From contig MU008176.1 in assembly GCA_010909165.1 (NCBI GenBank), positions 984,856 through 1,048,855 on the forward strand: a DNA stretch of 64,000 nucleotides, in the 5' to 3' direction. Position 1 is the first letter of the stretch. The number at the start of each line of letters is the position of its first letter. The position numbers and the translations under genes were made by a program. The notes beneath the pieces are model-generated. The model worked only from the letters and a program-made list of their open reading frames with translations, searched no databases and was not told where the DNA came from. This stretch comes from Anthoceros angustus. Its lineage: Eukaryota; Plantae; Anthocerotophyta. Shown in pieces: positions 40,156-43,302 of this stretch.

Positions 40156-43100
40156 TCAAGGAAAGATGCCGCTGACCCGGTAGCATGTGGCAATCCTCTC
40201 AATAGCAATCAAATATGCGGCCGTCCGAAAATTGCACCCCTGGATTGTCAAAACATCGGTTACATCACTCTGCAAAACATTTACGTCAACAAAGTATAGC
40301 ACATTGGGGCAACAGCATACCCGACTGAGAGCCGTGCGCTTCACATTCTCCCAGCTAGTAAGCATAGTCTCCTCAAGGCCTGACCAAACAAAATCCACTT
40401 CTGTGTTGCTGCAAAGAAAAGCAAACATCCATCAGCAACGCGGTTCTAGAACACTTGAAACGTTTGCTTGATGTTTGGACAGAGAAGATTAAAACTACCC
40501 CTTCACTATTTCCTGACGGAGGTTGTCAGCAATCTTGGTGCCATTTCCAAATTGACGTTCCAGTGCTTCAATCAGATTCTGCACAAGAAAGCATGAGACT
40601 GTGAGCTACCGTTTCTGTTTTGCTGATTAGTAGCACGGCATCAAATGTTTTTTTCTCACACCCGTTTGCCACGCTCCTCCATTCTCCTGCTCATGCGGCC
40701 GAACCGAATGTGGTTGAGGTTCTTCAGCCATTCGAAATAGGAAACGGTGACGCCGCCCTGAATTAGGGAAATCGATGAGTTACAACAGCTGACAGTTGGC
40801 AGCTTTGGTTGAATCTGTCAAGGAGTCCAAATTCGTGGAAGGAATCAACCAAAGGTATTTAGCAGCGTACCGCATTTAACAAAAGGTCAGGAAGAATCAC
40901 GATGCCTCTTTTCTCCAAAATCTCCTCTGCAGGAGGGGTGACTGGTCCATTTGCGGCCTCTGCAATAACTTTTGCCTGTGTACCGAACCAACATCCATCA
41001 GTTATTTGAGCCTAATTTAATTGGCATAGCGTTCTTGGACGCCAACTTGAGAGTGAAATAACCAGGGGTAGGCGGTTTAGCCTTCAAAGCTACAACAGGC
41101 AGAGTTGTTACCTTGATATGGTCGGCATTTCCTGAATGCAGCTGAGACTCGAGCGCGGCGGGAATCAGTACATCACAAGGGAGCTCAAGAATACTTGAAG
41201 AGTTCGCAACCTAATATGATGCGAGGCCTGGAGGAAGTCAATCGCACAGAACCAACAAGGGTCCCAGACAGAGAGTTGCAAGAAGAACTACTGCCGTGGA
41301 TGTTTACCACTTTTGCACCGGGGAAGTTTGTGATACTTCCATATTCCTTGTAGTGAGACCCTATAGCAGGAATGTCCAAACCGTGCCCTGTCTCATCAAC
41401 AAGGCCCCCATCATGCTCTGCTATAGCAATGATACGAGCTCCAGCTTGATGCAGACTCTGCATCACAGAAAAGATTTAGGCACATGGAGTCTGACAGAAT
41501 ACTTAGCAATTTTCTGTGTGATCTCAACTTGGAGACCCACATCGCCTGGGCCCTAATAGAACAATCAGGTTCAACATCCTAAAACCCTTACATCAATTGT
41601 ATGCCGCCCAACATTTCCAAAGCCTTGTACAATGATTTTCTTATCTCTGACTCCGGCAGTGAGACCCACTTTGCTCACCATATCCTGTGCGAATTCTTAG
41701 TCAGCATCACTAGTATAATCTCTCTACGAAACCAAGTGAATCATCAGTACACGACAAAACTAGAGACTGCTGGAAGTGCGGCATGTAGGGCAGCATAAGA
41801 ACATACATGATCATTCAGAAACTCCCTCAAACAGAAGAACACTCCCAATCCCGTTGCTTCTTGCCTTCCATTAATACCACCCTGTTACCACGCAGAACAG
41901 TAAAAAAGAATTGAGCAACCGTTTGAATGACTCGGCATCTGGTAACAAAGTCAATCTTCTGCACCAGTGAAGGCGAATGCGTACAGCTGCAAGCATGCAT
42001 AACTTACCTCTTCCAAAGGCTTTCCTGTAACAACAGCTGCAGAATTTATGTCTGTTGGTCTTAGGTGCTCAAATGTATCCTGCAATGCAATGAAAACATG
42101 GTGAAAATTGCAAACATTTTATACATTTATTAAACATATGCTACATCCTTTTCATATGCTTTAACTTTACTGAAAACATCTAGCTTTCACGCCAACAACA
42201 ACAATATTCATATTTAAATACCTTTATCCAAGCCATCTCCTGTGGTCCAGTTCCATAATCAGGTGCCGGGACATCCTGACAAAACACAAATACATAAATT
42301 AAGTTGATTGGGCACTCCTCCCAGTTAATCCAGGTCAGAAGGACGTCATGGCAAAATGATGAATTTCAAACTAAGGTTTGACAGCACCGTACAATTGCAG
42401 GGCCGATGAAGTTCTTCTTCACAAGTTCACTCGTGTAACGACGTATGACAGCCTCCTTCTCAGCCAAAGAATACTTGGAAGGGTCTACAGAAATTCAAGG
42501 TTTAAGCATCAAAGGAGTGAAGGCACAGCAGAGTACCAAGGGAGGCTAGCTCGAATACCTATCTTGATGCCACCTTTAGCTCCCCCGAAAGGAACATCAA
42601 CCACAGCACATTTGAAGGTCATCAACGCGGCAAGTGCCATGGTTTCATCGGCATCAACATTCGGTGCCATTCGAATGCCACCCTTCACTGTGGCAAGGCA
42701 GTCGGCTCAGTCAACAGTGTCATCCGAAAGGGAGCTCACTTATAACCGCTTCGAATTCCGAACAAGACTGACATACCAGGAAGCCGATGATGCGAGTGCT
42801 GGGCACGATAGGCTTCTATTAGCTCCACAGTCCCGTCAGCACACTTGAGTGGAAACTGCACAGTAAGCATATTGTTGCACGCCTGGCAGCAAACGAGGAG
42901 CATGTGAGCGTCTACTGTACAAGAACAGCTGCGAAACCGAGTGATCGCTCAGAGCTCGTTCAGAATGCAGCTCAATGCCCTAACCTTGATCTGCGCAAGG
43001 ATGTCATTCGTAGTGGACGCAAGTAAAGCTGCCTTGTCAAAGAACATATCCACGGACCGAAGAAATGTGGGGTCACCTGAACCACAAGGCACCAAGTGAG

Positions 43101-43302
43101 TCCGCATCAATAAAGGATGGGCAGGCAACAAACGATTTGTAGACAAAAACGAAACCGAAAAGAAGGAAACATCCTTACAATGACTTCCCTCTGCTACAAC
43201 AGGGACAGCAGAACTTGATGTGCTCTTGGGGTGAAGGGCTGAATCCCGCATCTTCAAAGCCCGTTCCACCTTTCGAATCAAGGACATGGGCCTCCGTGCC
43301 AT
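40156..43302 (-). CDS. GDH: Glutamate dehydrogenase, probably mitochondrial, multi-exon, animal/ciliate-like C-terminus
   Basis: [89 protein letters not shown]. Basic N-terminal presequence [19 protein letters not shown]. Confidence 0.92.

Follow-up and report, generated by a model that had tools for sequence, protein, structure and literature searches.

A transcribed gene for a putative antenna-bearing, GLUD1-type glutamate dehydrogenase in Anthoceros angustus

Introduction

In work on plant nitrogen metabolism, the plant set of glutamate dehydrogenases (GDH) is taken to consist of GDH1/2/3 and a long NADP-type enzyme. Enzymes of the GLUD1-type subfamily have a mature length of about 470 residues and carry a helix-loop-helix antenna, inserted after the NAD(P)-binding domain and ahead of the pivot helix. 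Recent reviews still present this antenna as an invention of animals and ciliates. Does a land plant nevertheless possess such an enzyme and, if so, where did the gene come from and is its product regulated like the mammalian one? The question is raised by a stretch of 64,000 nucleotides of Anthoceros angustus contig MU008176.1 (assembly GCA_010909165.1, forward strand positions 984,856 to 1,048,855), referred to below as the window. An initial annotation of the window read a GDH with an animal/ciliate-type antenna region at 40156-43302, placed it in a lineage other than that of angiosperm GDH1/2, either retained from early eukaryotes or acquired laterally, and proposed that it may be allosterically regulated.

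Gene structure and transcripts

The coding sequence runs on the minus strand of the window from the ATG at 43302 to the stop codon at 40156-40158 (43302..40156). It is divided into 16 exons by introns of 74-142 nt, all of the GT-AG type, and forms an intact open reading frame for a GDH of 512 aa. The peptides quoted in the initial annotation are indeed encoded there, on that strand. The base composition of the locus is that of the adjoining sequence. The features are listed below in the order of transcription; residues carry bovine numbering, "joints" are exon joints in transcript contigs, and X1, X2, X14 and X19 are public sequencing runs.

43330..43508, minus strand: probable 5'-UTR intron of about 179 nt, boundaries approximate; an upstream UTR exon resumes at 43509
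43179..43302, minus strand: coding exon 1, aa 1-41 plus 1 nt; contains the start codon and encodes an N-terminal extension that is basic and rich in Ser and Ala; an X2 contig spans 43177-43329
42985..43076, minus strand: coding exon 2; the intron 2 side is backed by the joint 42881>42984, the intron 1 side by the GT-AG model and X2 pieces
42777..42882, minus strand: coding exon 3; start of ELFV_dehydrog_N (Pfam PF02812, E = 2e-6); joints
42559..42687, minus strand: coding exon 4; KGGIR and FGGAKGG motifs with catalytic K90, K114 and K126; PF02812, E = 1.3e-16; joints
42393..42484, minus strand: coding exon 5; joints
42222..42275, minus strand: coding exon 6; DVPAPD with D168; joints
42008..42079, minus strand: coding exon 7; joints
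41807..41881, minus strand: coding exon 8; mammalian GTP-site residues H209, S213 and R217 replaced by N, E and L; joints
41592..41684, minus strand: coding exon 9; GFGNVG dinucleotide-binding motif; joints
41308..41457, minus strand: coding exon 10; NAD(P) domain (PF00208), E275 at the end of beta-2; GTP-site residues R261, Y262 and R265 replaced by D, S and Q; joints
41112..41210, minus strand: coding exon 11; joints and Pfam scan
40871..40975, minus strand: coding exon 12; PF00208, E = 1.6e-9; joints
40662..40757, minus strand: coding exon 13, aa 398-429; the antenna is predicted to begin here, at about aa 413 (40712 downwards), with its coil and ascending helix, the helix being transferred from the model of a moss orthologue; joints
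40499..40578, minus strand: coding exon 14, the antenna exon, aa 430-455; predicted remainder of the ascending helix, loop and short descending helix; in contigs of all four runs
40321..40408, minus strand: coding exon 15, aa 456-485; predicted antenna base and pivot helix; GTP-site H450 replaced by W and ADP-site R459 by T; joints
40156..40239, minus strand: coding exon 16, aa 486-512 and stop codon; the C-terminal helix closes with SGIFP; joint 40238>40320 recovered from each of the four runs
39950..40155, minus strand: 3' UTR, at least; an X1 contig is collinear from 40238 to 39950 and continues further

Contigs from the four public runs have 14 of the 15 coding introns spliced out; one further joint was counted without being itemised, and that of intron 1 is the one missing from the list. 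We take these runs to be RNA because their contigs lack the introns, the run label "RNA?" being itself a guess. The contigs of run X1 are 100% identical to the window, with no mismatch, while those of X2, X14 and X19 differ at about 1-5 positions per exon of roughly 100 nt (roughly 97% identity) and come from related organisms. The exon encoding the insert (40578-40499), whose presence in transcripts the initial annotation had set as a check, is spliced on both flanks and was recovered in all four runs. An alternative acceptor for the last exon at 40269, giving a protein of 522 aa, was ruled out by the transcript joint, which places the start of exon 16 at 40239. The 5'-UTR intron is based on one contig from a related species: the loose end that the X2 contig has at 43329 agrees with 43509-43538 except at 2 positions. 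The Anthoceros antenna GDH gene is therefore intact and transcribed. From its composition, and from the alignment of the following residues to the start of the mature animal enzyme, the N-terminal extension of exon 1 is probably an organelle (mitochondrial) presequence.

Relationship to animal and plant glutamate dehydrogenases

Exons of the Anthoceros gene match PF02812 (E = 1.3e-16 and 2e-6) and PF00208 (E = 1.6e-9 and weaker), and both domains are present in the orthologues. When exon 13 alone was compared with the PDB, animal GDH chains were matched with E-values of 2e-9 to 1e-7, Arabidopsis GDH1 and GDH2 with values of 0.05-0.07; the resemblance to animal GDH is therefore not due to chance. 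Matches of this 32-aa exon to the repeat proteins P0001 and P0126 were set aside as artefacts, and its other matches are mostly fragments, the full-length ones being carried forward. The PDB matches of exon 10 were also discarded, those to TAL-effector repeats being spurious products of a short IAIAEHDGG match and that to RocG being weak only. PDB entries 8QF0 and 8S3G were ruled out as plant GDHs, since both are worm GDH.

Fold predictions and full-length comparisons with the PDB were performed with the orthologue P0156 from the moss Ceratodon, which is 80% identical to the Anthoceros protein without gaps. P0156 aligned with GLUD1 over its full length with 445-452 bits, versus 270-277 bits for Arabidopsis GDH1/2 (AtGDH1/2), to which it is 35-37% identical and for which the alignments ended at the FEW motif. 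Whereas the canonical NAD-GDH1/2/3 of angiosperms count about 411 aa and have no antenna, the Anthoceros protein has 512 aa and a 42-residue insert. It lies outside the angiosperm GDH1/2/3 group and, judged by its sequence, belongs to the antenna-bearing GLUD1-type subfamily of the ELFV dehydrogenases. The distinction from angiosperm GDH1/2 drawn in the initial annotation thus holds, the lineage being nearer to GLUD1 in both sequence and predicted fold and having an antenna-type insert.

The antenna insert

The additional residues are located between the FEW motif and the pivot helix, where an insert of about 40-50 residues is the mark of the subfamily. From the GGVTV motif to the C-terminus we counted 115 residues in the Anthoceros protein, 73 in Arabidopsis GDH1 (6yeh_A 342-414) and 126 in bovine GDH (3etd_A 376-501), so that the insert adds about 42 residues to the Arabidopsis GDH1 length and is about 10 short of animal GDH. 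The segment from FEW to RTAAY gives the same picture, with 85 residues in Anthoceros versus 95 in nine animals, and 82-85 in every non-animal member compared.

The AlphaFold model of P0156 has a pLDDT of 95 (84-94 over the insert) and a pTM of 0.91. It contains a helix at residues 386-404, a loop, a helix at 412-419 and the pivot helix at 424-450. In a Foldseek search with this model, the top 39 matches were all animal GDH (TMq 0.86-0.93), AtGDH1/2 reaching 0.76-0.81. AlphaFold predicted the same succession of helix, loop, short helix and pivot helix for a Bacteroidia member, whose best structural match is also animal GDH. By way of its moss orthologue, the Anthoceros insert is predicted to fold as an antenna, with an ascending helix, a coil and a short descending helix, followed by the pivot helix. 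The designation "animal/ciliate-type" needs amending: the form is a short one, about 10 residues below that of animals, and it is found throughout the subfamily, including hundreds of bacterial genomes.

Distribution and origin of the gene

Orthologues were found in streptophyte algae, from the Mesostigma/Chlorokybus grade onwards, and in bryophytes, lycophytes and ferns. No seed-plant homologue appeared among the best 120 matches of ranked word searches, which do list bacteria at about 54% identity, and no named chlorophyte was among the matches of the same searches; the Anthoceros protein itself was not among them either. Red algae, dictyostelids, chytrids, Heterolobosea and Anaeramoeba carry the same short insert, as do bacteria, of which at least 574 genomes were matched, mostly from Bacteroidota.

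In a tree that was unrooted and built without ciliates, named chlorophytes or an antenna-less outgroup, the Anthoceros protein falls inside the embryophyte clade (100/97) as its own land-plant lineage, within a streptophyte clade (100/98). The 15 introns all recur at the same position and in the same phase in the orthologues of Marchantia, Selaginella and Closterium (a liverwort, a lycophyte and a zygnematophyte), in which exon 14 (80 nt) and the coding part of exon 16 (81 nt) also have equal lengths. Since the protein is nested in the land-plant and streptophyte clades and all 15 introns are common to these lineages, we conclude that the gene is old and was vertically inherited in streptophytes, from algae to ferns.

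By lateral transfer from bacteria or some other eukaryote, the gene could have reached an early streptophyte ancestor and gained its introns afterwards, so that it would not descend from the first eukaryotes. Such an origin would agree with the patchy distribution, seed plants and named chlorophytes being missing from the matches, and with the bacterial members being only slightly less similar (51-54%) than the other eukaryotes. The tree does not place red algae as the sister group of streptophytes, and its deep eukaryotic branches are not resolved. Outside streptophytes a single intron position is exactly common, with Batrachochytrium, and there is no exact match with Daphnia or Hypsibius, where near-coincidences only were seen (residue 456, phase 2 versus 0; residues 363 versus 365). 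However, eukaryotes and bacteria part at one branch (98/98), and no bacterial sequence adjoins the streptophytes. In an AU test this single split was not rejected (p = 0.56), the tree holding the bacteria together being slightly better. Animals, fungi and Amoebozoa moreover group roughly according to the species tree (94/88). We therefore regard an early lateral origin as unlikely. Of the two origins offered by the initial annotation, old inheritance fits a tree that follows streptophyte phylogeny, the shared introns and the single branch between eukaryotes and bacteria, and lateral acquisition is the less favoured.

Catalytic and regulatory residues

Residues were compared in bovine numbering, the assignment of which was validated against nine animal sequences and PDB anchors. 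All seven catalytic and substrate residues are kept (K90, K114, K126, D168, R211, N349 and S381). In contrast, none of ten residues of the mammalian GTP site is kept in Anthoceros: H209, S213, R217, R261, Y262, R265, K289, E292, K446 and H450 are replaced by N, E, L, D, S, Q, P, G, V and W, respectively, although most of them are conserved across the nine animals checked. The Anthoceros enzyme thus appears, from its residues, to be devoid of the GTP site that regulates the mammalian enzyme. The arginine of ADP activation on the pivot helix, R459 (R463 in human), is a Thr in Anthoceros and varies throughout the non-animal members. At the ADP site, an Ala stands in place of H195. Replacement of human R463 by Ala abolishes ADP activation (PMC5372004).

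Could the enzyme nevertheless be regulated like mammalian GLUD1, with GTP inhibition and activation by ADP and leucine acting through the antenna? The antenna is present and predicted to fold as in GLUD1, and, according to reviews, a ciliate GDH with a truncated antenna responds to ADP by activation and to palmitoyl-CoA by inhibition (PMC12145852). Five residues in the vicinity of the ADP/second-NADH site (H85, R86, D119, H391 and R396) are also kept in Anthoceros. However, bacterial members keep these five residues too, and they are therefore uninformative on animal-type regulation. Together with the replacement of all ten GTP-site residues checked and the changes at R459 and H195, this makes GLUD1-like regulation very improbable, and the suggestion that the enzyme may be allosterically regulated is not supported in its mammalian sense.

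Discussion

That the gene is a contaminant, was recently transferred horizontally into this genome or is a dead copy, as an animal-like sequence in a plant assembly might suggest at first sight, is scarcely credible in view of its 15 spliceosomal introns at the exact Marchantia, Selaginella and Closterium positions, the nesting of its product among land plants, its intact reading frame and full set of catalytic residues, its spliced transcripts (one 100% identical, others of about 97% from related organisms) and a base composition that fits the neighbouring sequence. We consider it highly probable that the locus is an intact and expressed nuclear GDH gene of the GLUD1 type, vertically inherited in streptophytes from Mesostigma/Chlorokybus-grade algae to ferns and not found in seed plants, whose product would be a hexameric organelle enzyme with an antenna that operates without mammalian-type GTP inhibition.

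The protein would be imported into an organelle, most likely the mitochondrion, and form the usual GDH hexamer. There it would interconvert glutamate and 2-oxoglutarate plus ammonium with NAD(H), or possibly NADP(H). Within a trimer, the three antennae probably wind round one another, as in bovine GDH, and transmit between subunits the movements by which the NAD domains open and close. This coupling could provide cooperativity or a platform for effectors, rather than mammalian-type GTP inhibition.

As to the antenna itself, we lean slightly towards the reading that it is not an invention of animals and ciliates but ancestral to a GDH subfamily of bacteria, notably Bacteroidota, and of early eukaryote mitochondria, kept by streptophyte algae, bryophytes, lycophytes and ferns and lost in seed plants. 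If so, non-seed plants have a second, structurally distinct GDH, and the antenna works without the mammalian nucleotide sites.

The orthologues are already in databases under automatic names, such as "glutamate dehydrogenase, mitochondrial" in Selaginella and "glutamate dehydrogenase (NAD(P)+)" in Marchantia. In the literature on plant antenna GDH and on antenna evolution, we found no description of a plant antenna-type GDH or of its clade. What is added is that bryophyte-grade plants carry and transcribe a GLUD1-type GDH with a predicted short antenna, an architecture that recurs in hundreds of bacterial genomes. Natural antenna-bearing GDHs without GTP sites could teach enzymologists what the antenna does alone. 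For plant biology, this would be a gene that the lineage leading to seed plants has lost and that can be knocked out in model bryophytes.

Comparison with known glutamate dehydrogenases

Nothing about the fold, the chemistry or the family is new, and no new kind of system is involved. Mammalian GLUD1/GLUD2 (bovine, human; PDB 1HWY, 1L1F, 3JCZ, 8AR7) and worm GDH (8QF0, 8S3G) belong to the same subfamily and are 47% identical over about 470 residues. They have in common with the Anthoceros enzyme the FEWLKNLNH motif, an antenna followed by the pivot helix (predicted here), the catalytic residues and an N-terminal presequence (probable here). The Anthoceros antenna differs by about 10 residues, its coil being without a stretch equivalent to GKHGGTIPIVP; other residues stand at the ten GTP-site positions checked and, in the ADP site, at R459 and H195, and no intron position matches exactly those of the animals Daphnia and Hypsibius. 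By published accounts, ADP activates the ciliate (Tetrahymena) enzyme, whose antenna is truncated, and palmitoyl-CoA inhibits it (PMC12145852; PMC11050691). Like the Anthoceros enzyme it would combine a short antenna with the absence of full mammalian regulation, a likeness that is drawn from the description in reviews and serves as a lead.

The mitochondrial-type GDHs of dictyostelids, chytrids, red algae, Willaertia and Anaeramoeba are members of the same short-antenna subfamily (41-53% identical), but they come from other supergroups of eukaryotes, and the majority of their introns have no counterpart in Anthoceros. The bacterial enzymes, from Bacteroidota (Chitinophaga, Pontibacter, Lacibacter, Filimonas), Rhodothermaceae, KSB1 and a Chloroflexota MAG, are 46-54% identical. 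They share the distance of 83-85 residues from FEW to RTAAY and the predicted antenna, and are likewise without the animal GTP-site residues, whereas they have neither presequence nor introns and lie on the opposite side of the 98/98 branch from eukaryotes. Arabidopsis GDH1 (6YEH) and GDH2 (8OWM), plant mitochondrial enzymes of the same hexameric class, have the same ELFV core and chemistry, and their core superposes on the P0156 model with a TMt of 0.93.

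Structure and transcription of the gene

The gene model comprises 16 coding exons on the minus strand (43302-40156), separated by GT-AG introns of 74-142 nt, and its exons match the Pfam families ELFV_dehydrog_N and ELFV_dehydrog. The peptides cited in the initial annotation were all located in exons 13-16:

40757-40662, minus strand: exon 13, whose 3' end codes a 25-residue peptide
40578-40499, minus strand: exon 14 (antenna exon), coding a 27-residue peptide
40408-40321, minus strand: exon 15, beginning with a 15-residue peptide
start at 40239, minus strand: exon 16, containing a 12-residue peptide
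43508-43330, minus strand (approximate): probable intron in the 5' UTR, about 179 nt, between the UTR exon at 43509 and the ATG exon

Parts of the window were present in 24 public runs, and the contigs of four runs (X1, X2, X14 and X19) were aligned to positions 39950-43450. These contigs omit introns at CT..AC ends (GT..AG on the minus strand), indicating that they originate from spliced RNA, the runs being labelled merely 'RNA?'. The X1 contigs showed no difference from the window and come from the same organism; those of X2, X14 and X19 differed from it at about 1-5 sites in each exon of ~100 nt, roughly 97% identity, and come from close relatives. The contigs confirmed 14 of the 15 coding introns, all but intron 1; the table of joints mentions one further joint, not displayed. 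The spliced contigs placed the start of the last exon at 40239 instead of 40269, which removes ten residues and leaves a protein of 512 amino acids. Exon 14 was found in the contigs of all four runs; the condition that the initial annotation named as refuting its reading, absence of this exon from transcripts, thus does not hold.

The loose end of one X2 contig, from a related species, matches 43509-43538, which suggests an intron within the 5' UTR, about 179 nt long, before the ATG exon; the GC-rich upstream region at 43509-43760 would contain the 5'-UTR exon. At the other end, a convergent plus-strand gene (38900-39927) ends in ...LHITIRAIL, with its stop at 39925-39927, 229 nt from the glutamate dehydrogenase (GDH) stop codon. 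As one X1 contig (1196 nt) spans GDH exons, the gap and the region of this neighbour, the 3' ends of the two genes probably overlap or abut.

Sequence and fold relationships

When exon 13 alone was compared with the PDB, animal GDH chains were matched with E = 2e-9 to 1e-7 over 27-28 residues, reaching into the antenna, whereas the match to Arabidopsis GDH1 and GDH2 (E = 0.05-0.07) covered just the first 16-17 residues. Fold and full-length PDB comparisons were performed on P0156 from the moss Ceratodon, the closest named orthologue, standing in for the window protein (80% identical over residues 40-512, without gaps). P0156 matched GLUD1 over its full length with 445-452 bits, against 270-277 bits for Arabidopsis GDH1/2, where the alignment ended at the FEW motif. 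The initial observation is confirmed, and the proposal of a GDH lineage apart from the angiosperm type is right. The AlphaFold model of P0156 (pLDDT 95, pTM 0.91) has a helix (386-404), then a loop, a second helix (412-419) and a long pivot helix (424-450); carried over to the window protein, these elements would correspond to R421-F439, G440-A446, D447-V454 and E459-S485. In a Foldseek search with this model the best 39 chains were animal GDH (TMq 0.86-0.93), followed by Arabidopsis GDH2 and GDH1 (0.76-0.81).

Distribution

Orthologues were gathered by two word searches and one cluster look-up.

Orthologues and their identity to the window protein
Mosses (Ceratodon, Physcomitrium, a Sphagnum-like transcript): 76-80%
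Liverworts (Marchantia, Riccia): 76-79%
Lycophytes (Selaginella, Diphasiastrum; two paralogues each): 63-78%
Ferns (Adiantum, Ceratopteris): 71-74%
Zygnematophytes (Closterium, Spirogloea): 62-74%
Other streptophyte algae (Chara, Chlorokybus, Mesostigma): 56-61%
Other eukaryotes (red algae, dictyostelids, chytrid fungi, Willaertia, Anaeramoeba): 41-53%
Animals (nine sampled species): 47%
Bacteria (Bacteroidota, Rhodothermaceae, KSB1, a Chloroflexota MAG): 46-54%

No seed plant appeared among the best 120 matches of either word search. Since these included bacteria at about 54% identity, any seed-plant orthologue with some 70% identity would have come out well above them. A scan with a Bacteroidia member, with one genome per prokaryotic species, matched at least 574 genomes; those among the matches listed were mostly Bacteroidota (Chitinophagaceae), with cultured Chitinophaga, Lacibacter and Filimonas among them. 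The orthologues were already present in public databases under automatic names, and no paper found in our literature search describes the plant clade or reports that seed plants lost it.

Phylogeny, intron positions and origin

A maximum likelihood tree of 61 sequences (LG+C20+F+G4; ultrafast bootstrap/SH-aLRT) recovered a streptophyte clade (100/98), with Chlorokybus and Mesostigma basal, and within it a land-plant clade (100/97) in which the window protein forms a separate lineage beside liverworts, mosses and vascular plants. Animals grouped with fungi and Amoebozoa (94/88). A single branch (98/98) split bacteria from eukaryotes, the long-branched Willaertia being the sole eukaryote on the bacterial side; a tree uniting all bacteria was slightly better and was not rejected (p-AU 0.56). 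The more divergent second paralogues of the lycophytes, P0178 (Selaginella) and P0177 (Diphasiastrum 18G), formed the sister group (97/85) of every other land-plant copy, lycophyte first copies included, which suggests either fast evolution or an ancient duplication retained by lycophytes alone.

Exact exon mapping was performed in seven other genomes. All 15 intron positions and phases were identical in Marchantia, Selaginella and Closterium, as were the lengths of exons 2-15 and of the coding part of exon 16 (81 nt). The intron preceding GCNFR (phase 0) also occurs in Batrachochytrium; none was shared exactly with Daphnia or Hypsibius. Two plant introns lie 1-6 nt from introns common to Daphnia and Hypsibius (residue 456, phase 2 versus 0; residue 363 versus 365; junctions 40499/40408 and 41112/40975), which could reflect sliding of ancient introns or coincidence.

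The tree placement and the 15 shared introns exclude a recent transfer, contamination or a pseudogene. They bear out the old inheritance proposed initially as one of two origins, the other being lateral acquisition: these sequence comparisons show that the gene has been inherited since before the zygnematophyte/land-plant split. Descent from early eukaryotes has the better support but is unproven with an unrooted tree that lacks ciliates, chlorophytes and antenna-less outgroups.

Predicted catalysis, regulation and targeting

Residues were numbered from bovine GDH (3etd_A, residue 376 being the first G of GGVTV), and the numbering was verified against nine animal sequences; at every regulatory position the majority of these carry the residue known from mammals. 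As K90, K114, K126, D168, R211, N349 and S381 are retained, the window protein should be catalytically competent. None of the ten mammalian GTP-site residues checked is kept (H209, S213, R217, R261, Y262, R265, K289, E292, K446 and H450 are replaced by N, E, L, D, S, Q, P, G, V and W, respectively), and R459 is replaced by Thr; in the human enzyme, changing the counterpart R463 to Ala abolishes ADP activation (PMC5372004). From these replacements, GTP inhibition of the mammalian kind appears very unlikely and ADP activation via R459 unlikely, and the suggested allosteric regulation is not supported in a mammalian form. H195 is replaced by Ala; H85, R86, D119, H391 and R396 are retained, also in the bacterial members. 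E275 is retained as well, but since it is also present in the dual-specific bovine GDH it does not settle coenzyme preference. The first 41 residues, encoded by exon 1, are basic and Ser/Ala-rich and lie ahead of where the mature animal enzyme aligns, from which we infer organelle targeting, probably mitochondrial.

Antenna size across the subfamily

From GGVTV to the C-terminus, the window protein has 115 residues, Arabidopsis GDH1 73 and bovine GDH 126, so that the insert adds about 42 residues to the Arabidopsis length and falls short of the mammalian one by about 10. In a single alignment, the FEW-to-RTAAY segment, which encloses the antenna, was 95 residues long in each of the nine animals, the additional residues lying in the antenna coil, and 82-85 in all other members, the bacterial ones among them. 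The AlphaFold model of the Bacteroidia protein (pLDDT 91) also displayed the helix-loop-helix-pivot arrangement, with animal GDH as best structural match (TMq about 0.92), and the Rhodothermaceae, KSB1 and Chloroflexota MAG proteins carry a short antenna too. Segment length and the Bacteroidia model together indicate that the short antenna characterises the subfamily as a whole and is not peculiar to animals and ciliates. The initial label 'animal/ciliate-type' is too narrow. The wide distribution conflicts with recent reviews limiting the antenna to animals and ciliates, which describe it as 'specific to mammalian GDH' and, in ciliates, as truncated (PMC12145852), and as absent from other GDH types (PMC7326016).
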